A DNA stretch of 64,000 nucleotides from Histomonas meleagridis 2922-C6/04-290x (taxonomy: Eukaryota; Protista; Parabasalia): assembly GCA_020184695.1 (NCBI GenBank), contig JAANOX010000248.1, positions 186,001 through 250,000 on the forward strand, read 5' to 3'. The notes under the pieces are model-generated. The model was not told the origin of the DNA and made no database searches. It was given only the letters and a program-made list of their open reading frames with translations. Below, piece after piece: positions 138 to 57,645 of the stretch; the first letter of the stretch is position 1, and each line of letters opens with the position of its first letter. The translations under genes and the position numbers were made by a program.

Positions 138-2682
138 ATGACTGAGCCTTGTTCATCCTGCTTGAAATTCCTAATTGAGCTTGAGAAAAATATATTCAGT
201 TTAACAGAAGAAAACTTCAAGGCGTCCTCTAAAAAAGTATTGGAATTATTCGATTCAAACTATCCTTGTACATTTAATACTATTATAAGTAACATCGTTT
301 TTAATGCATTTTCATCACAAAAACAAGCATTTGATATTTCCATAAATTTTTTAAAAACACTTCAAACGAAAGAAGAAGAAATTAATCAAAATATAGTTAA
401 ATTAATGTCAATTTTTATCAAACGTATATCCAAAATTAACACACAAGAATCATATTATTTAATCGAGAAATTAATTGAACAAAATTTGGTTGATAAAAGT
501 ATTACCAAAAATATTCATTCAAAATATTTTGCTCATTATAAAACAGAAGAAGAAAACCAAAACAAAAATCATTCAGAATTTGAGTATGATAGAAATGATC
601 AAATAGAAAAATACTTTTTGGATAATTACAAAAAACTTTCAAAGAACAATTGGGAACTTCATAAGAAGTATGTTAAAGAAGGAGTTAATCCGAACGAAAT
701 AGCAAAAGTAATTCGATATGATGACATAGAAAACCTTCAAGAAATATCATCGCAAACAAATTTTGATTTTAACCAAACAATCGAACCATCACTTTATGAA
801 AGGTGTTCATTTATTAATCAAGAAAATGTTACATTAATTGATTATGCCGCATTCTTTGGATCAGTTAAATGTTTTAAATATTTACTTGTGAATAATGCAA
901 AAGTAGAAAACACAGGTAAATATGCAGTTGCAGGTAGAAATGAAGAAATCATTCATTTATGTGAACAATATCATTCATCATTTGAAGGTGCATATGAAAC
1001 AGCAATTGAATTTCATCAAAATGATATTTTTTATTATATTTATGAAAATAAATTAGAAAAAATACAATCAATGCCGAAAATGGATGAAGATAAAACAAAT
1101 GATTTGTTAAGTCTTTGTATTAAAAAAGATAATTATGAAATTTTAACATTTTTGGAAGAAAAAGGAATGAATTTTAATGTTGATAATATAAATGAAACAG
1201 CAATGAATGGAAATTTATATCTCGTTAAATATTTCCTTCAAAATAATCAAATACCAAAAAACATTTTGCATTTTGCTTCAGAATCAGGAAATGTTGAACT
1301 TGTGAAATATGTTGTGGAACAAAAAGGAATAGATGTTAATACAAAAACTATTCATTTGAATAATTTATAATATGTTTTAATAATTTGAAACAGCACTTCA
1401 TATAGCAGTTAGAAATAATAATATAGAAATAGTAAAATTACTTTTAGATAAAGGAATTGATGTTAATGCAAAAACTATTTATTTGAATAATTTAGAATAT
1501 GTTTTAATAATTTGAAATATGTTATAATAATTTGAAACAGCACTTCATATAGCAGTTAGAAATAATAATATCGAAATAGTAAAATTACTTTTAGATAAAG
1601 GAATTGATGTAAATGCAGAAAATATTTGTTTGAATAATTTTTTATATGTTTTAATAATTTGGAATATATTTTAATAATTTAAAATATGTTTTAATAATTT
1701 AATATATATTTTGATAATTTAGAATATGTTTTAATAATTTGAAACAGCACTTCATATAGCAGTTAGAAATAATAATATCGAAATCGTAAAATTACTTTTA
1801 GATAAAGAAGGAATTGATGTTAATGCAGAAACTATTTATTTGAATAATTTAGAATATGTTTTAATAATTTGAAATATGTTTTAATAATTTGGAACATGTT
1901 TTAATAATTTGAAACAGCACTTCATATAGCAGTTAAAAATAATAATATCGAAATCGTAAAATTACTTTTAGATAAAGAAGGAATTGATGTTAATGCAAAA
2001 AATATTCATTTGAATAATTTTGGATATGTTTTAATAATTTGGAACATGTTTTAATAATTTGAAACAGCACTTCATATAGCAGTTAGAAATAATAATATAG
2101 AAATAGTAAAATTACTTTTATATAAAGAAGGAATTGATGTTAATGCAAAAAATATTCATTTGAATAATTTTGGATATGTTTTAATAATTTGGAATATGTT
2201 TTAATAATTTTATATATGTTTTAATAATTTGAAACAGCACTTCATATAGCAGTTAAAAATAATAATATCGAAATCGTAAAATTACTTTTAGATAAAGAAG
2301 GAATTGATGTTAATGCAAAAAATATTCATTTGAATAATTTGGAATATGTTTTAATAATTTTATATATGTTTTAATAATTTTATATATGTTTTAATAATTT
2401 TATATATGTTTTAATAATTTAATATATATTTTGATAATTTAGAATATGTTATAATAATTTGAAACAGCACTTCATATAGCAGTTAAAAATAATAATATCG
2501 AAATCGTAAAATTACTTTTAGATAAAGAAGGAATTGATGTTAATGCAAAATATATTCATTTGAATAATTTGGAATATGTTTTAATATTTTAGAATATACA
2601 TTAATAATATTTGACTGCAATTCAAATTGCACGACAAGAAGGTTACACAGAAATAGTAAATTTACTTCGTGAAAAATTATAA
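138..2682 (+). CDS. Segmented DUF3447/ankyrin-repeat gene (locus A): continuous ORF 138-1370, then 8 ankyrin units separated by non-coding spacers
   Basis: ORF has trichomonad DUF3447-type motifs (IRYDDIENLQ, FDFNQTIEPSLYERCSF, LIDYAAFFGSVKCFKYLL). Units ETALHIAV(R/K)NNNIEIVKLLLDK(E)GIDVNA start at 1387, 1534, 1741, 1911, 2061, 2231, 2461; terminal unit LTAIQIARQEGYTEIVNLLREKL* at 2611-2682. The extent beyond 1370 assumes spacer removal. Confidence 0.8.
1350..2610 (+). repeat. Nested tandem repeat: 90/93-bp ankyrin unit alternating with arrays of a 20-bp minisatellite (consensus about GGAATATGTTTTAATAATTT)
   Basis: Direct reading. Spacer lengths 37, 57, 117, 77, 57, 77, 137, 57 nt all equal 17+20n. 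Confidence 0.95.
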
Positions 2683-3040
2683 TTCAGAGTCTTCTTCTAT
2701 ATACATCAAATCTTCATTTTCAATAAGAAATGGAAATGAAGCATGTTTTAATAATAATTAAAATCAACTCGAATAGCAAATGTTTACAGAAAACAATCGA
2801 AAGAAAAGCACCTAAAACAATAAGTATCTGTTAATGCTGAAAGAAGAAAATGTTTATAATGAAAATCTCCATGGTCCGTATTCAGATTGTACGACTAAAT
2901 GAAGTATATTCATCACTTTTTTTTAAAAAATCGCTCATAAAGTGAATTAAAATTATTTTATATTTCGAAAAAATTAATTTTTGTAAAAATAGCAACAAAA
3001 TAATGCTAGAAGACATGCATTTATTTTGAGCAATGAATCA

Positions 3041-5600
3041 TTATGAAATTGAACATGACACATTCGGTTCAGGAGGAATCACATTTGGGTTTATTTTTTC
3101 TCCCTTTTTTTCTTCCTCTTGTTGTCTTGTTCTTTCTTCATTTTCTTGTTGTCTTGTTCTTTCTTCATTTTCTTGTTGTCTTGTTCTTTCTTCCTCTTGT
3201 TGTCTTGTTCTTTCTTCCTCTTGTTGTCTTGTTCTTTCTTCCTCTTGTTGTCTTGTTCTTTCTTCATTTTCTTGTTGTCTTGTTCTTTCTTCATTTTCTT
3301 GTTGTCTTCTTCTTTCTTCATTTTCTTGTTGTCTTGTTCTTTCTTCCTCTTGTTGTCTTGTTCTTTCTTCCTCTTGTTGTCTTGTTCTTTCTTCATTTTC
3401 TTGTTGTCTTGTTCTTTCTTCATTTTCTTGTTGTCTTGTTCTTTCTTCATTTTCTTGTTGTCTTCTTCTTTCTTCATTTTCTTGTTGTCTTGTTCTTTCT
3501 TCCTCTTGTTGTCTTGTTCTTTCTTCCTCTTGTTGTCTTGTTCTTTCTTCATTTTCTTGTTGTCTTGTTCTTTCTTCATTTTCTTGTTGTCTTGTTCTTT
3601 CTTCATTTTCTTGTTGTCTTGTTCTTTCTTCATTTTCTTGTTGTCTTGTTCTTTCTTCCTCTTGTTGTCTTGTTCTTTCTTCCTCTTGTTGTCTTGTTCT
3701 TTCTTCATTTTCTTGTTGTCTTCTTCTTTCTTCCTCCTCATTGATAGCATCTTCATCATCTGATCCGTATTCTTCTTCTTTTTCTTCTTCCAAACGTTTT
3801 ATTTCATTTTCTAAATGTTTCTTTTTATTTACATATTCGTATGGTTCCTTATTTTGATTGTTTTTAATCCAATCTTTCATTTCACTAATTTTCATTTTAA
3901 TTTTATCTTTTTTATTATTTGATAAATTCTTATTCCTTAATTCAATTAAACATTCATTACAAAACCCATTAAATTCATCCATTGCTTTGAGTCTTTGTTT
4001 ATCCATTTCCTTTTTTTGTTGATATTCTATTTCAATTTTTCGTAACCTTTCTCTTTCATTTTCGGACAATCTTCCAGAGTTATTGTTAATTTTAATACTT
4101 CTCATACAACCTGATCTTATGTCTAACGCAGATACATATAATATTCCGTTTTCATTGATCGAAAACTTTACGTCAATGAATCTCTTTTCGTCTTTTTTCG
4201 CGAGTGCTACTGGTAAAATAATATCTCCGAGGTAATGATTCTCATTTAAATTCTCACTTTCACCTTCATAAACTTCGATTCTAACTTCTTGGTCATAATC
4301 ATTTTGCGGCTCATACTGCTTCTTATTTTCTGTTGGGATTTTTGTATTTTTTTTAAGAATTTCACTAAATTTACCATTCACATTTACTACAAGTGTAAGA
4401 GGTATAACATCATCAACAGAAATATCTTTTAAACTTTGTTCCCCTTTAATAATAGCAGCTTGGATCGCTGCGCCAGTTGCTACTGCTGTTCTTGGGTCAA
4501 TGTTTTTCCGGATTTTTCCAGGAAACATTTCTTCAAGTTTTTCTTGAATATATTTAATCGATGAAGAACCACCAATAAGTACAACATCAGTAACTTGCGA
4601 TTTTGGCATTTGAGCATCAATTAAAACTTTATTAACTCTATCAAATGTCGAATCAAAAAGATCTCGACATATCTCCACAAATTTTGTTCGCTTGATTTCT
4701 TTAAGAATTCCATGCCCTGGAAATAATCCGGAGGTATTTAATGTAGCTGTAATTTTAGATGATAATGTTGTTTTTACTACCTCACATTTGTTTTTTAATG
4801 TACTTAATGTGCGAGGTGAATTTCGTGGATCAATTCCATAGAATTTTATGATTTTCTTCGAAAAATAATCAACAAGTCGATTATCAAAATCTTGTCCACC
4901 TAAATGAGTATTACAGGCTGTGACAAGAACTTTGAATTTCCCACCTTCTACTTCAAGTAATGAAACATCGAATGTACCACCTCCAAGATCATATATTAAG
5001 ATATAACGTCTTTCACTAAATCTCTTCTTATAACCATATGCATAGCTGCGGCTGTTGGTTCATTAATAATACGTAAAACATTTAGACCTGCAATAGTTGC
5101 AGCATCTTTGGTGGCTTGTCGTTAGCCATCATTAAAATATGCTGGAACTGTAACAACAGCATCTTTTATCTTGAACTCAATCTGACCTTCCGAAATTTCC
5201 TGAATACGTCTAAAATCTTGGATGAGATTTGTTCAGGATATAATTGTTTGATTTCATCATTAACTTGAACTTGAATCAATGGTAAACCTGTTTTATCTTT
5301 GACTACTTTGAAAGGCCACTTTGGAATATCTTTTTTTATCTCTTCAAAACTACGGCCTAGCATACGTTTGGAATCATAAATAGTATTGGCTGCATCTTCA
5401 GAAATCCCATTGGCTGCCTCTTCGCCAACAATTATATTATCACCATCAAATCTAACGATGGATGGTATTTACTCTTTGCCAATAAAGTTCAAAAGATAAT
5501 CAATTTCTCCTTGGATATAAACAGCACCACATGTAAATGTTGTGCCAAGATCTATTCCAAGAGCAAGTTTCGAAAAATCGATTTGTTTTCGTTTCCTCGT
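3041..5600 (-). pseudogene. Cytosolic-type Hsp70 homolog, disrupted in its 5' part, with a repetitive charged C-terminal tail
   Basis: Minus strand reads [73 protein letters not shown]. In-frame TAA at 5122-5124 and 5469-5471, plus frameshifts near 5040 and 5435. No clear start ATG. Frame open from about 5040 to 3041. Confidence 0.85.
3112..3737 (-). repeat. Tandem 24/27-bp repeat encoding QQE(N)EERTR, about 24 copies
   Basis: Visible TCTTGTTGTCTTGTTCTTTCTTC(A/C)T.. units; explains the overlapping repetitive ORFs in other frames. Confidence 0.95.
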
Positions 5601-5719
5601 TTTGGGTGGTAAAAAATGCCACCTTTCTCTCCCCAGCACAAATTATTTTGACTTGCTTTGTTAAAAATTACAGCTGTAATAAACCTCAGAATACGAAAAA
5701 TTACTTTAAACATTTATAA

Positions 5720-7803
5720 ATGTGTTTCCAATTTTTAAGCAATATACAAAAAACAATTAGGGAGTTAAAAGAAGAAAATATTGATGAATCGATTGAAATA
5801 GTCAAAGCATTATATGATTCAAATTTCCCAAATTCTTTTTATATAATTTTAGCTCAAACAATTTTTTCAGTGATAATATCACATATAAATAACATTGATT
5901 TATATTTTCAATTTCTGAATGAAATCCAAAATATAAATGATCATTTTAATGATATTTTTATTCAATATCTTCTTCATTTAGATTCTCAAGAATCTAAATA
6001 TTTAATTGAAATGATGATTAATTTAAATCTTGCTGACATTGATCTTGTTCAAACTAAAAAGTCCCTTTATTTCGCACATTATAAAACGAATGTTGATATT
6101 GATAGGCTAATGCATAACCAGAATATTCCATTTGTTGAAACATTTAAAGACAATATTAAAAAACTTTCAAAAAATGATTGGGAACTTCACAAACGATTAA
6201 TTAAAGAAGGAATTAACTCAGATGAAATATCAAAAATAATTCGAAATGATGAAATAGGAAATCTTTTAGAAATATCATCGCAAACAAATTTTAATTTTAA
6301 TCAGACAATCGAACCATCACTTTATGAAAGATGTTCATTTGTTAATCAATATAATGTTAGATTAATTGATTATGCAGCATTCTTTGGATCAATTAAGTGT
6401 TTTAAATATTTACTTATGAATGGAGCTTATATAATTTTAACAGGTAAATATGCAGTTGCAGGCGGAAATTTAGAGATAATTCATTTATGCGAACATAATC
6501 ATTCATCATTTGAAGGTGCATATGAAGTTGCAATTGAATTCCATCGAAATGATATATTTTATTATCTTTATGAAATTGATATTATTAAATATATAAATTT
6601 AGAAGATTTAGCAAAGAATTGTATTTTATATAATAATTATGAAATTTTTCTGTTTTTAGAAGAAAAAGGTTTAAATGTTGAAGATGAATTAATCATTGAA
6701 GTAATAGAAAGTGGTAATTTATATCTTTTAAAGCATTTACTTGAAAAAAATGAATTGCCAAAAGAAATTTTAGTTTCAGCTATAAAATCAAGAAATATTG
6801 AAATTGTTCAATATGTTATTGATCTAAATGGGTTTTATAATGGAGATAAATATATATTTTTTATTATATTTAAGATTTGTTTTAAATAATTAATTTTTCA
6901 ATTTTTTAAATGGAATTTAATATTATTATTTAATACGCCATTTTTAATTGCTTGTAAACAAGGTTCCGTTGAAATTGCAAAATTGCTTCTTAAAAAAAAG
7001 TATAGTAAAATAGGTGAGAAAAATATTTCTAGAATGAATTTAATATAAATTTTTAATTTTTCGTGTTTAAAATATATATTATTTGCTAATGGACTTTATT
7101 TAGCATCAAAATATGGTCATATTAAAATGATTAAATTCCTTCTTAGGCATAAAATTGAAATTGCACTTAATTTCTATATAATCTTTTCAAAGATAATTTT
7201 TATTTTTTGATATTCATATTTTATTTTTCATGATTATTTTTCATGTTTTTTTCACCTCTTATGATTGCAATATTTTATGGTCATATAAAAGTTATAAAAA
7301 TATTACTCAAAGAAGGAATTTATATAAATGCTATTGAATTTTATTTAAAAAATTGTATGATTTAATCTAATTTTAACATATAGAAGACCACATCGTCATT
7401 ATATCCTTGCACCATTATTTCTTGCAACTGAAAATAATAATGCAAAAATAGTCAAATTACTTCTCAAGCAGAAAGGAATTGATGTTAATATTAAAAATTT
7501 TTATTTGTTTTATTTAATATTTATTTTAATAATTTGAAATTTCAAAATATTATTTGGAAATGATTTGAATAATATAAAACAGCACTTATGATAGCATCTG
7601 AAAAAGGTTACACAGAAATAGTTAAATTACTTCTTGAACATGAAGGAATTGATATTAATGCTAAAAATATTTATTTGTTTTATATAAAATTTATTTTTCA
7701 AAATAATATTTGGAAATTATTTAAATTATTTGACACAGCATTTACATTCGCATCTAAAAATGGTCATGAGGAAATAATTCAATTATTTCTTGAGCACAAA
7801 TAA
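5720..7803 (+). CDS. Segmented DUF3447/ankyrin gene (locus B): ORF 5720-6889 plus 6 spacer-separated ankyrin units
   Basis: DUF3447 motifs in ORF. Units NTPFLIAC.., ANGLYLAS.., SPLMIAI.., APLFLAT.., KTALMIAS.., DTAFTFAS..EHK* ending at 7803. Confidence 0.75.
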
Positions 7804-19400: not shown

Positions 19401-22328
19401 ATGGAAAAATCAAGCAATATGCAAATGCTGTATATGCTTGAGAATATATTGTTAAATATAAATAAAGAAAATATAGAATCTTCAATTGAAAAAACCATTC
19501 TTTTATTTGATAAAAATTATCCTTCATCTTTTAATAACATTATATGTTTATTAATTTTTTCATTATTTTCTTCACGAAAACAAGAAGCAGATATATATCT
19601 AAATTATTTACAATTATTAAATAACAAAGAAAAAGAAATTAATCCCAAAAATAATATCATTGATTTATTTTGTGAATTTATATGTAAAAAGAAAAAACAA
19701 GAATCATTTTATTTATTAGAAAAGATGATAAAACAACATATGGTTGATTCAAGTGTAACTGAAAATTTTACTTCTAAATATTTTGCACATTACAAAACTA
19801 AAAAAATTGGGAGTAAAATGTATTATGGCGATCCATTTTGTAGTGACTTTTTATATAACATTGAGAAACTTTCTGAAAATAATTGGGAACTACATTTAAA
19901 ATATATAAATGAAGGAGGTAATCTGTTAGAAATAACAAAAGTAATTCGTAATGATGATATTGGAAAATTACAAGAAATATCATCACAAGAAAACTTTGAT
20001 TTTGATCAAAAGATTAAACCATCACTATATGAAAAATTTTCTTTTATTAACAAAGAAGGTATATCATTAATTGATTATGCAGCTTTTTTTGTCTCAATAA
20101 AATGTTTTAAATATTTAATGTTAAATAATTGTAATCTTTATAATACAAGTAAATATGCAGTTGCAGGTGGAAATTTAGAAATAATTAAACTTTGTGAACA
20201 AAAGGATATTTCATTTAGTGGTGCATTTAAAACAGCAATTAAATTCCATAAAAATGATATATTTCATTATCTATATGAAAATATGTTTAATAAAATTAGT
20301 GATGAATTTGTTCCAATAAAAGTTCATAAGATATTAAATCGATTAAAATTTTCTTTAAATGATAAAATATTAAATTTTTTAGGTAAACTTTGTATTAAAA
20401 GTAATAACTATGAAATTCTTTCATTTTTAGAAAAAGAAGGAATGAAAGTTACTGCTTATGTTATTAATAAAGCTGCAAAAGTAGGGAATTTATTCCTGAC
20501 TAAATACTTTTTTGAGAAATATCATGTTCCAAAAAATATCTTAGCTGATGCTACACAATCAGAAAATATAGAAATTATTAATTATATTCTTAAACAAGAT
20601 GGAATCCTTGTTAATGCTAAAAGTTTTTCTTCATTTATTTTGATATTTATTTATATGTTTTTAATGTTTTAATATATATTTTGATGTTATTTTTTATTAT
20701 TTGATGTTTCACTTGTTTATGCAACTGAAGTTGGTAATATAGAAATCGTGAAAATTTTATTGAATTTACCTGATATTAATGTAAATACTAGAGGTAAGAT
20801 TTTTTTAGATAATTTAATATTTTATATTTCTACTTGGTGTTTATTTTAATATATTAAAGCAGCACTTATTTTTGCAACATTGAATAACAATATTGAAATT
20901 ACTAAATTACTTTTAAATCATAAAGATATAGATGTTAATAAAAAACATATTAATCTCAATTATTTATGATTTCATCAATTTGTATAATGTTTTTTTAAAT
21001 GCTTTAAAACTCCATTATTTTTTGCAATCCAACATAATTATCCAGAAATTTTTAATTTACTTCTGAATCACAACAAAATTGATTTAAATATAACCGGTAT
21101 TATATTAATTTTTTTGAAGTTTGTTTAAACTATTTAATGTTTTAGAATAATATTTAGAATTTATTTCATCTTTTTAGAACAGTTCTTATAGAAGCATGTA
21201 GAAAATCTCGTGAAGAAATGGTTAAATTACTTCTTGAACGAAAAGAAACCGATATAAACGTAAATGCAAGAGATGTTAATTAATTTTTATTAAATTTAAA
21301 TATAACATTTTGATATTTCATAAATATATTTGGAAATTCTTCAAATTATATTATACAGCACTTATGCATGCAATTAATGGAAGTTATGTAAAAATAATAA
21401 AATTACTTCTTCAAGTCGAAGGAATTGATGTTAATGTTAAAAATATTTTTTTGTTATATATAAAATTTGTTTATTTGTTTAATATTTTTTAGTTTTATAT
21501 GGAAATCAATCAAATTATTTTCAACAGCACTTATTTTAGCAGTTGAAAGAGGTTGTCTTAATATAGTTAAGTTACTTCTTGAGAAAAATGGAATTGATGT
21601 TAATATTAAAAATATTTTTATTGTTTTATTTGTTATTTATTTAACCTATATAAAATTTCAAAATAAAATTTGCTAATTATCTAAATTATTTAAATCAGCC
21701 ATAACTATAGCAATTGAACAGAAAAATTTAAATATATTTAAAGTACTTCTTGATCATAAAGGAATTGATATTAATTCTACAGATATTTTTTTGTATTATT
21801 TAAAGTATTTTATAATAATTTAAAATCTCAAAATAAAATTTGGAGTTTCTCCAAATATTTTAATACATTACTTATGATAGCAGTCAAAAAAGGTACTACT
21901 GATTTTGTTAAATTAATTCTTTTGAAAAATTATAAAGATATTAATAAGACAAATGTTTATTTGTTTCGTTTAATGTTAACATTAACATATTTCATGTTAC
22001 AAAAAATTATTTGGGAATTATTTTAAACATTTAAAACAGCACTTATGAAAGCAGTTTCAATTGGTAACAAAGAAATTGTGGAGTTACTTCTTGATCAAAA
22101 AGGAATTGATTCAAATATTGTGGCAGTTGTTTCACTGTATCTTGTGTTGATTTTATTATTATAATATTTCAAAATATTATTTGGAATATATTTAAATCAT
22201 TCGACACAGCGTTTTCTATTGCAGCTTCAAAATCTGCTCTGTTTATTTTGGGATTACTTATAAAAAGAAATGAAGGAAATGAAAAAACGTCAAATTTTAC
22301 AAGAGCATGTTTGGTTATACCAAAATAG
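19401..22328 (+). CDS. Segmented DUF3447/ankyrin gene (locus C): ORF 19401-20672 plus 10 spacer-separated ankyrin units
   Basis: DUF3447 motifs. Units DVSLVYAT, KAALIFAT, KTPLFFAI, RTVLIEAC, YTALMHAI, STALILAV, KSAITIAI, NTLLMIAV, KTALMKAV, DTAFSIAA..IPK* (stop 22326-22328). Confidence 0.8.
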
Positions 22329-22768
22329 TTTAGACTCAACATTTTTCATAAAAATACTATTTATTCCAAATATTAAGTGATTTTAATTTTTATTCTAACA
22401 TATTTTTAGATAGCACAACAGCTTGTATTCGAATTTAAATTGCGATCGCTATCATATCAATTTACTGTATTATTTTTCGGGGGTATGTACAATTCCTCTT
22501 ATTTCCAATTTTTTTCTATTCAATTGTTAATTAAAGTTTTAACATGAAAGAATTGCTTGATTGCATTTTGGTGCAATTTTTATTTATTATAAACTTTCCT
22601 TAATTTATAACATATATGTCCGTTTATGCAGAACTTAGACTTTGAGTAATTTTTTCCTTTTATTACATTTGTGGAAACTGTGGCACTTTTTATCCGTAAA
22701 AAATAAGGTGTGTGGGGAATCGAACCTGAGGCGCTATTAAATTTTTGTTTTGCTCGACCAAAATTTAA

Positions 22769-38785: not shown

Positions 38786-41700
38786 CTACGCTTTTTCGGT
38801 TTCATCCTTTTTCTCTTTCTCTTCGTTATGTCTATGCATTAACATGCAAGGGAAAAGGAAATGCCCAGCGCCGCAGTCACAAAATGCCGGACCACTACCT
38901 GACTGCGTTACGTCGTGGCCCTTGTGACATACCTTAGCGCATTCCTCGCAAAAACAGAAATTAATTCCTGAGTTATTCATGCAAGTTCTGCACCTATAAT
39001 ATCTATTGTGGTTTACCATTGTGTAACCAGTTTGCTCGAATGTGCAATGTCCAGGTATGAAAATGTCTCTGCGATTACCGGAATTCATCATCATTTCACT
39101 ATTTTGTTTTCTTCTTGCGATCAAATCAATAATTTCTTTCTTGTTCATTAAACCAGTTTCATTAAGAATTGTTTTCTCATTGTTATCTTTAATGTTGACA
39201 TCAATTTCCTTTTGTTCGAGTAACAATTTCACAATATCATTATGACAATTACGAGAAGCCTTTAATAAAGCAGTATCGAATTAACAAAATAAATTCCAAA
39301 TATTAATATGAAACAGTAAATCATATATATTAACATTAGTATCTCTTGCATTAATATCGATACCATTTTGTTCAAGAAGTAAATTAGCGATTTCGCTGTA
39401 ACCTAATTCAGACACAATCATTAAAGGTGTTTTAAATGAATATAATAAATTCCAAATGATATTTTGATATATTAAATCAATCGAATAAATAGTTTTAACA
39501 TTAACATCAATTCCTTCTTGTGTAATAAGTATTTTAACTATAACAACATAACAATTTAATACCGCTAATACAAATGCTGTATTTCGAAGTATTATAATAA
39601 AACTTCAGAACATTTAAATAAATATTTACACTTAAGCTATTAATACCTTTTTGTTTGATGAATAAGTCAATGATTTCTGCTTGTCCATTTAATAAACATA
39701 ATGTAAAAACAGTTTTAAATAATTCGGAAAAACTTCGAAAAGTCATATAAATGAACATCACTTGTATTGATTTCGATTCCTTCTTTTTCAAGTATTAATT
39801 TAATGATATCGATATGACTCTTTGAAGCTGCATGCATTAATGCTGTTTTATATATAATAAATGAACACCAAATATTTGAGTTAAACTTCAAATAATGAAG
39901 TTATATATTATCTCTTGCATTAATATCAACATTATTTTGGTCAAGAAGTAATTTAACAAGATCAGTATGACCATTTAATGCTACAATCATTAAAATTGTT
40001 AAAAATCACATAAAGAAACACCAAATATTATAAACAATTTCTATATTATTCAAATAGATATTATCTTTGATATTAATATCAACATTATCTTGTTCAAGAA
40101 GTAACTTAACTATATCCGGTTTATCATTTTTCAATGCTAAAATAAGTGCTGTCTTAAATACATTAAATAATTTCCAAATTAAATTTTGAATTTTCATTTG
40201 ATAAAAACAAATTCTAAATATAACAAATAAACATTTTTAATGTTAATATCAATTCCTTCGTGTTCAAGTAATAATTTAACTATTTCTGTACGGCCGAATT
40301 GTGCTGCATAAATTAATGCTGTTTGAAATAAAATGAATAAATTTTAAATATTTTTTAATAACATTATATTGACAAAACTAATATTAAGTAAAACAAATAA
40401 ATATTTTTAGCATTAACATCAATTCTTTCTTTTTCTAAAAGTAATTTAGTAATTTCTACACTTCCATTATACGCTGCAGACATTAAAGCTGTATAAAATC
40501 AACGAAATGAATTCCAAATATTATTTTGATATTTGAAATCAACAAAATCGATTTTATCTTTGTTGTTAACATCAATTCCATTTCGTTCAAGTAACATTTT
40601 CGCGATATCATTATTACAACATTTAATAGCCACAGAAAGAGCTGTATCAAAACTAACAAAAAAACTCCAAATCTTTCAAACAAATATTAAATCATTATAA
40701 CAAACATAAAATATTACATATAAATATCATTTGTTACATTAATATTAAGTTCTCCATGTTCAAGAAGTAACTTAACTACATCAGTATAACCATAACGAGC
40801 AGCAAAAAGTAATGGTGTGAAAAACATTTATAATAAACATCAAACATTTTTTAGAAACACGAAAAATACCTAAAAAACATCACCTCTCACATTAACATCA
40901 ACATTTTTATTCTGAAGAATTAACTTAGCGATTTCTTCGTAACCATTTCTTAATGCTAAAATAAGTGCTGTATCATATTTCTAAAATAAATTCCAAAAAT
41001 AATTCAAAAACTTTATGTAATTAAAACAAATTCTACATATAACAAATAAACACTTACTCCATTAACATTAATTCTTTCTTGTTCAAGTAATAATTTTGCA
41101 ATTTCTATTTCATTCTTTTTGATTGCCATAATAAGTGCTGATTCAAATAATAGAAACAAATTCCAAATTTAACATTGAAATTTTATATCATTAAAATTAA
41201 CTCTAAATATAACTTATAAACATTTGTTTGATTTATATCAATTCCTTCTTGTGCAAGAAGTAATTTTACTGTTTCCAAATAACCTTTTTTAGATGCTTTC
41301 ATTAATGATGTTTCAAATGATTTATATAAACATTAAATTATATAATCAAATTTTATGATTTTGTAAGTTTATGTTAATTCCTTTTTTCTCAAGTAAATCG
41401 AGCATTTGTTGATTACATCTTTTCAATTCATTAATAAGTGATTCTTGAAATCGTATAAATAAATTTCAAATATAATAAAGAAATTCGAAATGTTGAAATT
41501 ATACTTTAAACATTATAAATATATCTTATCAAAATTATTTGTTAGATTTTCTTGTTCAAGAAGTAACTTAAGGATTTCATTATGACGACTTTCCAATGAT
41601 TTCATAAGTGTTGATTTAATTATCAGGATTTAAGGATTCTGTGTGTCATATAATTTCATTGTATTTTCAATCGATAACTTGAGGTTTTCTTGGTTAAGAT

Positions 41701-44286: not shown

Positions 44287-44358
44287 GTCTCCGTAGTCTA
44301 ATGGTTAGAATAGGAGTTTAACACGCTCTTGACGGCAGTTCGATCCTGCCCGGAGACA
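44287..44358 (+). tRNA. tRNA-Val(AAC)
   Basis: Acceptor GTCTCCG/CGGAGAC+A; anticodon arm GGAGT-TTAACAC-GCTCT; T arm GGCAG-TTCGATC-CTGCC; 72 nt. Confidence 0.9.
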
Positions 44359-53141: not shown

Positions 53142-55820
53142 ATGCAGAAAAAATCAAATAGGGAATGCTATAAAAAAACATCATATCAATTCATGGAGCA
53201 ACTTGAAAATATTATATTTTCTTTAAGTGATGAAAATATCGGAGCAGCAATTCAATCAACATTAAATTTATATGATGTCCGTTTTTCATTTTCATATAAT
53301 CTTATTGTATCCCAATTAGTTTATTCTTCCTTTGTTTCTTTTGTAAATAATGAAAGTAGATGTTTTTTATATTTAATAGGAATTAATGAAAAAGAAAAAG
53401 AAAAGAAAAAAATTATAAATATATTTTATTGGTATCTTCTCCGATTGCAATCACAAGAATCAAAGTTTCTGCTTGAAAAAATGCTAGAACAGAATATGAT
53501 AGATGAAATCGAAAAGAAAAATGATAATTCTTTTTCTCATCAAAATTTATCTGATCAAACCAATAAAAGTAAAAACACTCAAAAATCTTCAAAAGATGAA
53601 TCAGAACTAAATAAAAAACAAACGCATGAAGGAGTTAATCAGTCTATTGTCGCTAAAGCAATTCGAAATGATGAAATAGAAAAACTTCAAGAAATTTCAA
53701 CAGAAACAAATTTCAATTTTAACCAAATAATTGAGCCATCACATTACGAAAAATGCACATATGTAAATAAAGAAAATGTTTCATTAATTGATTATGCAGC
53801 ATTTTTTGGGTCAATCAAATGTTTTAAATATTTATTATTAAATAATTCCAATATAGCAAATGCAGGTAAATATGCAATTGCAGGTGGAAATTCTGAAATT
53901 ATTCATTTATGCGAACAAAATCATTCATCATTTGAAGATGCTTATGAGATAGCAATTGAATTTCATCGGAATGATATCTTTCATTATTTGTATGAAAATA
54001 ACATTATCGAAATCAAAGATAAGATAAAACTTGGGAAAAAATGTATTAAATATAATAACTATGAACTTTTTTCATTTCTGGAAAAAGAAGGAATGAAAAT
54101 CAATGATTCCTTAATTAATGAAGCAGCAAGAAATGGTAATATATTCCTTACATTATGTTTTCTTGAGGAAAATAAATTACCTGATAATATTCTCGTTTCT
54201 TCTGCTGAATCAGGAAACATTGAACTTTTTAAATATATTCTTGAACAAGAAGGAATTGATATAAATGTTAAAAATGTTTTTTTAATGAATATAAATTTTA
54301 TTTCTTTAATTTCATGTTAATTAATCATATATGGATTTTATATTGTTTTTTTAGAACTGCACTTATGATGGCATCTGAAAAAAATGATACTGAAATTGTG
54401 AAATTATTGCTAGAATTAAAAGGAATAGATGTCAATGCTAAAGATGTTTTCTGGTTTGATTAAATTTTTGTTTTATATATTTGAAATTTCAATACAATAT
54501 TTGGAATTTAAATATATCTGATGAAACAGCACTTATTATTGCTTCTTCAAAAGGGAATATTGAGACAATCAAATTACTTCTTCAACATAAGAAAACTGAT
54601 ATTAATTTGAAGAATATTTTTTTGTTAATTATAAAGTTTATCATTAAAATAAGAAATTTCAAATGTATAAATGGTGTTTTACTAATTAATTCACAACACC
54701 GCTTATGTTGTCATGCATCTCAGGAGCAAATGATATTGTTCGATTACTTCTTGATCAAAAAGGAATTGATGTTAACTTAAAAAACATTTTTTTATTTCAA
54801 TTAAAGTTTATTTTACTGAAATAATGTTAAATATTAATTTTCGGTGTTTATTTTTACTATTTTGGACAAGTATAATGCTTGCATGTCGATATAACCATAT
54901 TGAAATTGTAAAAATGTTAGTTCTTAAAAAAGGTATAGATGTTAATTTGAAAAACATTTTTTAATATAATTTTTTGTTTATTCAAAATATTTAATGTTAA
55001 CAAAATACATTTAATATTTATTTCATTTTCTTTGGACAGCATTAATGTATGCATGTAATAACTCAAATCCTGATATGATAAAATTACTACTCGAAAAGAA
55101 AGGAATAGACCTCAGTACAAAAAATATTTATTTAATTAAATTAATATTTACAAATGATTTTTGGTGTATATAACCAAAATTTGGAATTTTTTCAACAAAT
55201 TTTCAATGGCACTAATGTGGGCATGTTCAAATGATCAACTTGAAATTGTTCAACTTTTAATTGAACGAAAAGTTAGTGTTAATGTTAAAGATATTTATTT
55301 ATATTTATTTAATGTTTCATTATATTTTTTTATGTTTCAAAATTATATTTGGTGTATTTTTATATTATTTAAAACAGCTTTAATGTATGCATGTACAAAA
55401 GAAAATATTCCAATTATAAAATTACTTTTAAGTCAAAAAGGTATTGATATTAATGCAACTGATGTTTTTTAATGAGATTTAATGTTTTAAAATGATTCTT
55501 AATGTTCTTTTCGTTGATTAACTGCTTAAATTTAATTTTTGGTATTTGTTGAATTGTTTTTGGACAGCTTTAATATATGCTTGTTCAATAGGTAACACTC
55601 AAGTGGTAGAATTACTTCTTGAACAAAAAGGAATTGATACAAATATAAGAGGAATATATTTAAATTATTTAATGTTATTTTTATGTTTCTGATGTTTGAA
55701 AATATAATTTGGAATATTATAAAAGTTATTCGTACAGCTTTAATGTGGGCAAGCAAATTTGGTTACGAAGATATTGTTAATTTAATACTAGAAAAAGAAA
55801 AAATTGTAAATCAGACATAA
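53142..55820 (+). CDS. Segmented DUF3447/ankyrin gene (locus E): ORF to 54320 plus 9 spacer-separated ankyrin units
   Basis: DUF3447 motifs. Units RTALMMAS, ETALIIAS, TTPLMLSC, WTSIMLAC, WTALMYAC, SMALMWAC, KTALMYAC, WTALIYAC, RTALMWAS..NQT* (stop 55818-55820). Confidence 0.8.
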
Positions 55821-55949: not shown

Positions 55950-57645
55950 TTAAATGGAGATTTGGCATTTTACTAAAAGTAAAAATAATTTTGATTCATT
56001 TGTAATCAAACAATGAATATATATGAATAAAAAATTAACATTGTTACGAAAACGAACAATAAAAATTATAAGAATTATTATAAATACAATCGCAACAATT
56101 ATAACACAAACAATAATGATAACCATATTTGTTTGATTTTCATTATTATCATAAAAAATGTGAAATAATCCGAATAAAACAAAAAATATGTTGAATACTG
56201 AATAACTGTATAATGATAACATAAAAATCCAGTAAATAAATAAGTAAAAGAAGAAGATAACACCTTATTGAAACTATATATGTATTGGAAATAAATGAAA
56301 AGTAAATGATACAGAAAAGTTAATGAATATGAAAATGTTGTCTAAATTCATATGAATTCTCTAATACAAATGAATTCGATTTTGTAAATGCATTGGATGA
56401 AGTAAATGGAAATGATTTCATAAACGTATTTGAATTAATCAAAGCATTTGATTTAGAAAATGTATTAGAATTTGTAAAAGTATTTGATTTAGAGAATGTA
56501 TTAGATTTTGTAAAAGTATTTGATTTAGAGAATGTATTAGATTTTGTAAAAGTATTTGATTTAGAGAATGTATTAGAATTAGTAAAAGAATTTGATTTAG
56601 AGAATGTATTAGAATTAGTAAAAGAATTTGATTCAGGAAATGTATTTGATTTTGTAAAAATGTTCGATTTAGAAAATGTATTTGAATTCGTATATGCTGT
56701 AGAACATCCTGATACAGTTCCAAAGGTAATACTAAATATTTTAAATGCGTTACTTAGATATGTTTTTAACACCATAATTTCAATTTTATCTGTAACTATA
56801 TAAAAAGCAATATCACTAATTGTAGGTTCTGTTTCCCCATAAAAGTAAACACATTTAAGTTCATTGCACCAATTAAATGCGTAATCATTAATTATTTTTA
56901 CATTTTCTCCAATGCAAACAGTAGACAAAGAAATACAATATGAAAATAATCCATATGAAATAATTGATATTTTATTGGAAATTGTAAATGCTTTTAGATT
57001 AGTACAAAGACAAAATGTAAAATTACCAAAATCTATAATATTTTTACAATTAATAATTTCTTCTAAATTACCAGAAGAATAAAATGAAGATTCTCTAGTA
57101 GCAGTAACTGTTGATGGAATTTCATATGTTATACTTTCTTTACATGCTGGATAAAAGTAGATGGTTTGAATAGTTTTATCATAAAGAACTCCATCATCAT
57201 TCAAATTACAAAAATATGGATTATTCTCAGATATCTTAAAAAACTTAATTTTCTCACATAGTATAATAACACATTCACCAAATGAAATTACTGAATCAGG
57301 AAATGTTATGTTCTGCAAGAAATTACTATTTTGAAATGAACGATCTCCAAATATTTGAACACTTTTTCCAATAACAATTGATTCTAAATTATAACAAGAT
57401 GAAAATGCATAAGATTCAATTGTCGTAACAGAATCACCAATGATAGCTGAAAGCAAAGAACTCCATTCCGAAAAAGTACTTGATGGAATTGTATCAACAT
57501 TTTCATCTATAATAACAGCTGTAGAGTATTGCGATATTTCATCAAATTCATTAGAATTAGTAATTGTAAGTGTATCATCAGAAAATGTTTCTCTTGAAGG
57601 TATACAAAACATAATAAATATTAAAGGAAGGAATTTATTTTTCAT
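55950..57645 (-). pseudogene. BspA-like LRR protein: ORF 56320-57645 intact through the stalk, TM region out of frame
   Basis: Signal peptide, TpLRRs, SNTF(S/T)K stalk; frame break near 56345 before the TTFSYSLT segment homologous to the other BspA; TM VIIIVCVIIVAIVFIIILIIFIV lies in ORF 55950-56222. Confidence 0.75.
56445..56690 (-). repeat. 18/36-bp tandem repeat encoding the SNTFSKSNTFTK stalk
   Basis: Repeated TTTGATTTAGAGAATGTATTAGATTTTGTAAAAGTA on the + strand. Confidence 0.9.

Follow-up and report, generated by a model that had tools for sequence, protein, structure and literature searches.

Ankyrin arrays of Histomonas meleagridis with spacers of 17-nucleotide pieces and, probably, single retained codons

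Results

Five interrupted ankyrin genes

The DNA analysed here (the window) is a stretch of 64,000 nucleotides (nt) from Histomonas meleagridis 2922-C6/04-290x, positions 186,001 to 250,000 of contig JAANOX010000248.1 in assembly GCA_020184695.1, and our subject is a family of genes within it whose ankyrin repeats are interrupted by short T-rich spacers. The window is AT-rich, with a GC content of 20-36%, and carries housekeeping proteins (an adaptor mu subunit, XRN1, tubulin and a WD40 protein) on long unbroken open reading frames (ORFs). The family, which joins a DUF3447 domain to an ankyrin array, has five genes in the window, here called loci A, B, C, D and E, and its named homologues are from Histomonas meleagridis. 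The spacers are present in the DNA and absent from the RNA, where short in-frame strings of letters stand in their place. It is probable that the spacers are tandem strings of T-rich pieces of about 17 nt, which are removed, separated by single codons, which are kept.

The paper behind the published annotation of H. meleagridis gives no gene more than one intron and makes no mention of ankyrin (PMC8529796). Two annotated paralogues, P0015 and P0017 ('cask-interacting protein'), have models that both end ahead of any ankyrin array, and the hydrophobic C-terminal tail of P0017 (...YKGLFIIYIF) resembles a read-through into a first spacer. The ankyrin arrays of the family appear to be unannotated in the public protein models.

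The 20-nt modules of locus A

The first coding segment of locus A matches DUF3447, Ank and Ank_2 in Pfam, and the seven ankyrin segments that follow are 91-100% identical in pairwise comparison. Every spacer of this locus begins with the 17-nt leader ATTYATTTGAATAATTT and continues with one to six copies of a 20-nt module, counts that rest on the assembly. Tandem Repeats Finder recovers these 20-nt arrays with 82-90% matches. The 17-mer ATATGTTTTAATAATTT occurs in 24 copies when up to two mismatches are allowed, all of them on the 20-nt grid, against 0.62 expected from shuffles of the whole window. These head-to-tail units make locus A a minisatellite, and the number of modules differs between neighbouring, nearly identical units. 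Three TAT modules in a row within spacer 7 are identical (2364-2423), which together with the unequal module numbers points to recent gain and loss, so the view of the original prediction that modules are still being gained and lost here is borne out.

Most of the variation among the 24 modules lies in three of their twenty letters. The pairwise difference per site is 0.61 in the triplets and 0.065 in the 17-mers, and non-consensus letters amount to 35 of 72 in the former versus 14 of 408 in the latter (Fisher p 5e-22). A neutral minisatellite would not be expected to vary in this manner. The 17-mers look to be under constraint, as expected of a processing signal, and the triplets look free or diversifying. 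The loops predicted from the triplets range from one to six residues (I, RE, FGKNR, REG, WG, WGY, GYYYNR and GR, in the order of the spacers).

Spacer lengths over the five arrays

There are 48 spacers in the five arrays; 34 of them are exactly 17+20n nt long, 22 measure 76-78 nt and 12 measure 57 nt. The 20-nt quantum that had been proposed is therefore real, and the eight lengths given earlier for locus A (Table 1) were the same on remeasurement. The parsing of the older 77-nt spacers as 17+20+20+20 also holds, and the TAA TAA that was said to precede TTT|GAA in the downstream frame is present as claimed. In the earlier tally the 57-nt class had been undercounted (4, where there are 12), and the two 60-nt cases listed there parse as 57 nt with one extra exon codon. 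The irregular spacers (60, 63, 76, 78 and 80 nt) can be parsed in frame with one piece of 16, 18, 20 or 23 nt. At loci C, D and E the coding segments have diverged and are still open and ankyrin-like, while the spacers between them carry stops and frame shifts.

Anatomy of the modules and fit to the ankyrin repeat

With the spacers written in a 20-nt register counted from their 3' border, each 20-nt module consists of a T-rich 17-mer and a purine-rich triplet. The 95 pieces outside locus A have RTTTWTTTnnnnnATTT as their consensus. Their first position is A in 51% and G in 43%, and so a purine in 94%; T makes up 82-93% at positions 2-4 (93% at position 2), where C reaches no more than 3%, and 80-93% at positions 15-17, with 93% at the final one. 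Position 14, which lies 4 nt from the 3' end, is A in 74% of these pieces and in 96-100% of those of locus A. The triplets outside locus A have a different composition, with G at 40% and 31% at their first and second positions, compared with mostly 5% or less, and at most 16%, inside the 17-mers. None of the 93 triplets in the 34 exact spacers is a stop codon; at the other offsets in the spacers outside locus A, stops average 8.5%. The last triplet encodes glycine (GGA, GGT or GGG) in 20 of 26 spacers outside locus A.

When exon, triplets and exon are read together, the predicted products include IKN-NEG-KTAL, AKD-NEG-ETAL, LKN-KNG-WTS, TND-YNG-DTAL and VKT-NG-KTP, so that linkers such as NEG, KNG, YNG, KDG and NG stand ahead of x-T-A-L; NAKD-NEG-ETAL is a textbook ankyrin hairpin. 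The Pfam Ank model (PF00023) has a conserved glycine at position 2, two residues ahead of the threonine. The window offers an internal control for this spacing in the last linker of locus E (NIKDNNEKTIL), the only uninterrupted one, and the glycine of the predicted linkers is spaced as in that linker. The coding segments match Ank and Ank_2, and with the kept triplets the repeats come to 33-34 residues with the glycine before x-T-A-L; without them the units are 30-31 residues long and the glycine is missing. This becomes apparent also when arrays C and E are compared with uninterrupted ankyrin proteins of the Tritrichomonas type, which they match at 96-111 bits with the kept triplets versus 56-76 bits after removal of whole spacers.

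RNA and DNA contigs at the spacers

Three RNA runs (X3, X4 and X5) and one DNA run (X1), all of them in the form of assembled contigs, were compared with positions 1300-7299 of the window. Locus B is unique in sequence and without paralogue noise. Each of the three RNA runs holds a 380-nt contig of this locus (record 15 of X3, record 22 of X4 and record 29 of X5) that is free of mismatches on 6621-6854 and on 6932-7025 (234 and 94 nt), with 8 other letters in between. The DNA contig (record 7 of X1) is colinear with the assembly over 6620-7120. Positions 6855-6931, a spacer of 77-78 nt, are thus present in the DNA and missing from the RNA contigs of all three runs, and since eight other letters stand there in the RNA, the spacer has been replaced and not simply deleted. 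The triplets predicted to be kept at this spacer, AAG AAT GGA, have nine letters, and the first A is identical to base 6854; because of this the left alignment reaches 6854 and eight letters remain, as reported. The next RNA piece stops at 7025 and not at 7024, one base past the codon AAT, and this end is expected because the next triplet predicted to be kept, again AAT, starts with A.

At locus A the RNA picture is blurred by many paralogues, with very high summed depths. Between 39 and 45% of the words of 138-2700 are present in the RNA runs, and many RNA records pick up again at 1387, directly after spacer 1. All 12 of the 12 junction records of the locus A type that were displayed are in frame and free of stops, where chance would put each in frame one time in three. 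The triplets inserted in them (gga, gaa, aga, tat, ata and aaa) draw on the same set as the triplets that separate the 17-mers in the DNA, and the resulting linkers include NAKN-GGGEE-ETALH and NAKT-GY-ETALH. Two joints of this type were entered in our table of joints, and neither is found in the DNA run. At spacer 7 RNA joints lead from 2321/2323 to 2461 with 11 or 15 letters between, and these letters come from paralogues. At spacer 8 a joint from 2553 to 2611 is seen in X4 and X3. No letter of this joint fits both sides, and a direct junction would allow five such letters; given also that the right piece starts exactly at 2611, this is not a direct junction.

Searches of protein collections for the ORFs of processed RNA returned no candidates for a 78-residue piece of locus B and no match for the C-terminal 163 residues of locus E; with the 410-residue ORF of locus A only paralogues and relatives were found, in a collection that does not seem to include RNA-derived products of this organism.

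Relatives

Metagenome relatives with 38-55% protein identity to the 5' domain have the same spacer design in contigs L001 and L005. With the kept triplets their products read AKD-RAG-YTALM, ARD-DNG-LTALI and AMA-EGG-VT in L001, and LNIQD-NDG-CTSLM and INVKD-NNG-KTAIY in L005. The relatives also have piece-specific motifs in common, for example ATTTCAAAAT in the third piece.

L006 (2360-3330; Logan SRR19599918) and L007 contain a DUF3447-ankyrin gene that is more distantly related (32% identity). It is interrupted at the same position of the repeat by spacers of 55 to about 290 nt, with one of about 20 nt, and may represent an older or different state of the same system. We did not use L006 as support, as its spacers of 55-290 nt score below zero in a model of 17 removed and 3 kept letters.

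The Tritrichomonas foetus homologues have ordinary ankyrin linkers. One of them (P0021, TRFO_20532), also with ordinary linkers, ends abruptly in ...INITNIEIFFPG, much as if it were read into a spacer after N-I-T-N, and its sequence suggests that T. foetus may have a few such interruptions too.

Features of the arrays

Coordinates are collected in Table 1. Array E ends in a UBR-box zinc finger at 38786-39100 on the minus strand (Pfam zf-UBR, E 3.9e-07). Such a fusion of ankyrin repeats with a UBR box is unusual, and its domain content suggests a role in substrate recognition.

Table 1. Coding segments, spacers and arrays of the five ankyrin genes; kept triplets are as predicted from the parsing into 17-mers.
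Feature	Position	Strand	Remarks
Locus A, first coding segment	138-1349	+	DUF3447 and first ankyrin repeats, ends ...DVNTKT; ORF 138-1370
Locus A, spacer 1	1350-1386	+	37 nt; 17-nt leader, kept triplet ATA, 17-mer
Locus A, spacer 2	1477-1533	+	57 nt; three 17-mers, kept triplets AGA GAA
Locus A, spacer 3	1624-1740	+	117 nt; six 17-mers, kept triplets TTT GGA AAA AAT AGA
Locus A, spacer 4	1834-1910	+	77 nt; kept triplets AGA GAA GGA
Locus A, spacer 5	2004-2060	+	57 nt; kept triplets TGG GGA
Locus A, spacer 6	2154-2230	+	77 nt; kept triplets TGG GGA TAT
Locus A, spacer 7	2324-2460	+	137 nt; seven 17-mers, kept triplets GGA TAT TAT TAT AAT AGA
Locus A, spacer 8	2554-2610	+	57 nt; kept triplets GGA AGA
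Locus A, seven ankyrin segments	1387-1476, 1534-1623, 1741-1833, 1911-2003, 2061-2153, 2231-2323, 2461-2553	+	90-93 nt each
Locus A, unique last segment	2611-2682	+	stop codon TAA at 2680-2682
Locus B, ankyrin array	6830-7800	+	gene 5720-7802; includes 77-nt spacer 7499-7575 and 63-nt spacer 7669-7731
Locus B, first spacer	6854-6931	+	parsed as 18+17+17+17 nt; kept triplets AAG AAT GGA; predicted product GDKY-KNG-NTPFL
Locus B, second spacer	7025-7084	+	60 nt; kept triplets AAT CGT
Locus C, ankyrin array	54270-55817	+	gene from 53034; nine spacers: seven of 77 nt, one of 78, one of 97
Locus D, ankyrin array	20620-22330	+	gene from 19386; spacers 57, 57, 77, 77, 76, ~79, 77, 78 nt
Locus E, ankyrin array	38786-41650	-	16 units; spacers mostly 77 or 57 nt

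Discussion

Proposed piecewise removal with retained codons

From these observations we infer that the strings retained in the RNA are the triplets between the 17-mers and that the 17-mers are cut out one by one, each as a whole. With its length of 17+20n nt, a spacer would then give up n+1 pieces from the pre-mRNA and leave n purine-rich codons in the mRNA, and these codons would encode the hairpin loop between two ankyrin repeats, the last of them usually the conserved glycine. Each extra module would lengthen the gene by 20 nt and the mRNA by 3, with the frame always preserved, so that gain or loss of modules by slippage or unequal exchange would change the loop by exactly one residue, and locus A would be a coding minisatellite hidden within intron-like sequence. 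The mRNA letters predicted on this basis are AAGAATGGA between 6854 and 6932, AATCGT between 7025 and 7085 and GGAAGA between 2553 and 2611.

The 17+20n rule follows from this arrangement, because a spacer holds n+1 pieces of 17 nt and n codons. The original prediction had explained the rule by removal of the whole spacer in 20-nt measuring steps. Its first element is contradicted by the transcripts, which hold short in-frame strings at the spacer sites, and the second is not required, as the 20 letters appear to be made up of a conserved 17 that are removed and a variable codon that is kept. Since every number of modules keeps the reading frame, there is no need for a 20-nt ruler, and the pieces of 16, 18, 20 and 23 nt that fit in frame indicate that the borders are not fixed by a strict 20-nt step. 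The borders would thus be read from the sequence, possibly with a loose preference for removed pieces of around 17 nt. The suggestion that internal modules act as alternative acceptors can be recast accordingly as the idea that every module border is used. As for the prevalence of 77-nt spacers, we infer that it reflects selection on the protein and not on excision, because three kept codons restore a repeat of 33-34 residues.

Several points weigh against this reading. The runs were available as assembled contigs, which can show that a sequence is present and not that it is absent. At locus B the match of the eight letters to the triplets between the pieces lies in their number and in the ends of the flanking pieces. 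The locus A-type strings belong to paralogues outside the DNA examined, and none of them equals a string predicted for locus A. Additionally, X4 contains an 85-nt contig that is colinear through the last 17-mer of spacer 1 (1369-1453), which implies unprocessed transcripts, paralogues or DNA carry-over in that library; taken together with colinear RNA coverage of an Hsp70-like pseudogene described below, it indicates that some unprocessed RNA or DNA is present in the RNA libraries. The register is another concern. In a phmmer test the spacing, and with it most of the score, comes back whichever three letters of a module are kept, and although register 0 has the top summed score of the 20 registers (587 versus 564 or less) and no stops, its margin is modest. 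The glycines and the stop-free triplets are stronger arguments than the register score. With regard to the mechanism, the pieces have no invariant terminal dinucleotide at their 3' border, and 3-nt exons between 17-nt introns are hard to reconcile with the known footprints of the spliceosome.

The machinery

For the chemistry we lean, by somewhat more than an even chance, to a derived spliceosomal reaction that acts on one piece at a time, with RUUU as the 5' signal and A-UUU as the 3' signal, the A (position 14) being a possible branch point. To our knowledge the spliceosome is the only machinery that removes many internal pieces from nuclear mRNAs, and this, the introns of 15-23 nt in other organisms, the 5' RUUU and the conserved A near the 3' end are the reasons for our choice. 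As an estimate, we would give a little over half of the weight to a derived spliceosome, a clearly smaller share to an endonuclease with an RNA ligase, and the remainder to something else.

Known intron types were tried and rejected. The presence in DNA and absence from RNA are those of a U2-type spliceosomal intron, but a terminal AG is lacking and GT...AG borders give out-of-frame products. When GT-AG, AT-AC and ACAG-type borders were placed by hand on loci A, C and E, either the products were out of frame or the dinucleotides were not there. A U12-type intron (AT-AC, with 5' ATATCCTT, branch site TCCTTAAC and 3' AC) does not fit pieces that have C at no more than 3% at positions 2-4 and a 3' end of TTT. 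The position matrix of the pieces also differs from the Trichomonas type (5' GTAYGT, 3' ACTAACACACAG), and a search of the window for ACTAACACACAG with up to two mismatches gave a single match, in coding sequence at 435-446, where 3.0 are expected by chance.

More tentatively, the pieces may be handled by a dedicated non-canonical excision system, either non-spliceosomal or a deeply altered spliceosome, that recognizes a U-rich piece of about 17 nt from RUUU at its start, AUUU at its end and its length. Serial removal would leave single codons behind, and the module would be a frame-neutral coding minisatellite that varies ankyrin loops quickly; the hypervariability of the kept triplets of locus A would be the signature of such a system. 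We regard this as a possibility well short of an even chance.

A different and rather unlikely explanation has the same anatomy of 17 removed and 3 kept letters, with a U-tract endonuclease that cuts at RUUU and after AUUU and an RtcB-type ligase that rejoins the ends. The borders without GT-AG or AT-AC, and the purine followed by UUU at both ends of a piece, are in line with such an enzyme. Pieces of 17 nt and exons of 3 nt are awkward for a spliceosome, and the 3' motif of the Trichomonas type is not present. However, no pathway of this kind is known to act repeatedly on an mRNA, and internal ATTT motifs would be miscut unless length were measured too. There is also no conserved fold such as a bulge-helix-bulge or an IRE1-type loop: for 18 spacers with their flanks the consensus energy was 0.0 with no pairs, and single folds had a mean z of -0.67. 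A tRNA or archaeal bulge-helix-bulge intron and an IRE1-type intron were rejected for this lack of a fold to present the cut sites.

An improbable alternative: removal of each spacer as a whole

According to the next alternative, each spacer is one non-canonical intron that is removed whole by a machinery measuring 20-nt steps, and the strings in the RNA come from paralogues with uninterrupted linkers. The quantised lengths would suit it, the joints 2553/2611 and 6854/6932 lie at exactly the borders first proposed, and the RNA strings that were displayed cannot be assigned to locus A. On this view ...AAT would be joined straight to GAAACAGCA. At the unique locus B, eight extra letters stand in the RNA between perfect flanks. 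Whole removal would leave ankyrin repeats that are too short, lack the conserved glycine and score 25-40 bits lower. It leaves unexplained why locus A varies at 3 of 20 positions and why the triplets are stop-free and rich in glycine, and the ruler it calls for is broken by spacers of 60, 63, 76 and 78 nt. For these reasons we consider it improbable.

Decay, artefact and recoding as unlikely alternatives

It is very improbable that the interrupted arrays are decaying pseudogenes or artefacts of the assembly and that the RNA contigs derive only from intact paralogues or from DNA carry-over. The RNA runs do cover the Hsp70-like pseudogene colinearly, and locus A is highly repetitive. Despite this, the coding segments of loci C, D and E stay open while their spacers accumulate stops and frame shifts, and the RNA contig of locus B is mismatch-free on both of its unique flanks. 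The same architecture is kept in other species, on independent contigs, and at locus B the assembly matches contigs from short DNA reads, which makes an artefact, the objection foreseen when the array was first described, unlikely.

Weakest of all, and hardly credible, is the idea that the ribosome jumps over spacers retained in the mRNA, or that the spacers are lost from somatic DNA: short T-rich, stop-containing gaps within an ORF do resemble the bypass elements of phage T4 gene 60 and of Magnusiomyces mitochondria (byps), but bypass gaps remain in the mRNA and here the RNA contigs are without them, and the DNA contig over 6620-7120 is unbranched, so that run X1 shows no joined form. In-frame read-through under an altered code was rejected as well, as spacers of 37, 77 and 137 nt shift the frame.

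Comparison with known systems

Ultra-short introns of 15-16 nt occur in Stentor and of 18-21 nt in the Bigelowiella nucleomorph, and the pieces described here are like them in that about 15-25 nt are taken out of nuclear pre-mRNA with a tight modal length, including in an intron-poor parabasalid relative. They differ in their ends, which are R-T and T here and not GT-AG, and in the absence of a branch motif like that of Trichomonas. In addition, ultra-short introns number one or at most two per gene between ordinary exons, whereas up to seven pieces follow each other here at distances of 3 nt. Microexons of 3 nt occur in animals and plants. Removal with retained codons would be similar in that a single codon would stay between two excised segments and extend a surface loop by one residue, and at locus B the eight letters, counted and not read, and the piece ends fit three such triplets; known microexons, in contrast, are single, with long flanking introns and dedicated enhancers, where we see a tandem series with 17-nt neighbours. 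In euglenids and in Fritillaria borealis there are introns without GT-AG ends that are precisely removed and have proliferated within a lineage, all of which they share with the pieces of the window. However, neither class alternates with single codons, and the non-conventional introns of euglenids are much longer and have a fold that pairs their ends, of which we see no conserved counterpart.

The splicing of HAC1 and XBP1 by IRE1 and RtcB, and that of bulge-helix-bulge introns, removes pieces of 20-26 nt without the spliceosome. The likeness to HAC1/XBP1 lies in short pieces being cut out of an mRNA; both systems need defined folds, neither of which is present, and our pieces are almost without G or C. 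Coding minisatellites of surface or repeat proteins, known also as variable number tandem repeats, resemble locus A (1 to 6 modules) in that the number of head-to-tail units alters the length of the protein. They differ in that only 3 of 20 repeated letters would reach the protein here, and it is for this reason that a unit which is not a multiple of three can be frame-neutral.

For the lineage itself, a census of Trichomonas introns found strict motifs and no transcript with multiple introns. The spliceosomal introns of Trichomonas vaginalis are 23 nt long (PMC12316389). We searched the full-text literature on ankyrin, introns and microexons in Histomonas, Dientamoeba and parabasalids and did not find the arrangement described, so that removal of 17 letters with retention of 3 has no described precedent. 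If true, intervening and coding sequence would alternate here more densely than in any known case, with 17 nt out and 3 nt in up to seven times in a row, and there would be an intron-like class without GT-AG or AT-AC in a lineage believed to possess only a few dozen introns, all strictly canonical. It would bear on the minimum size of introns and exons and show how the frame can survive a repeat whose unit length is not divisible by three. Gene finders and splice-aware mappers miss such junctions, and a large ankyrin family has therefore probably been mis-annotated.

Other features of the window

A scan of the window with Rfam and ARAGORN had a single match, a tRNA-Val (AAC) at 44287-44358 on the plus strand. 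A BspA-type leucine-rich-repeat ORF at 56320-57645 on the minus strand adjoins a 36-nt tandem repeat at 56426-56692 (7.4 copies, 89% matches, as read on the opposite strand).

The Hsp70-like gene at 3041-5640 on the minus strand is split over three frames with in-frame stops, which makes it a probable pseudogene. The C-terminal part (3041-4678) is open and finishes with some 24 copies of the 9-residue repeat NEERTRQQE, with a 27-nt period at 3117-3733. RNA-run contigs are colinear with this region over 3693-5671, and at position 4802 two RNA runs have G where the DNA run has A.

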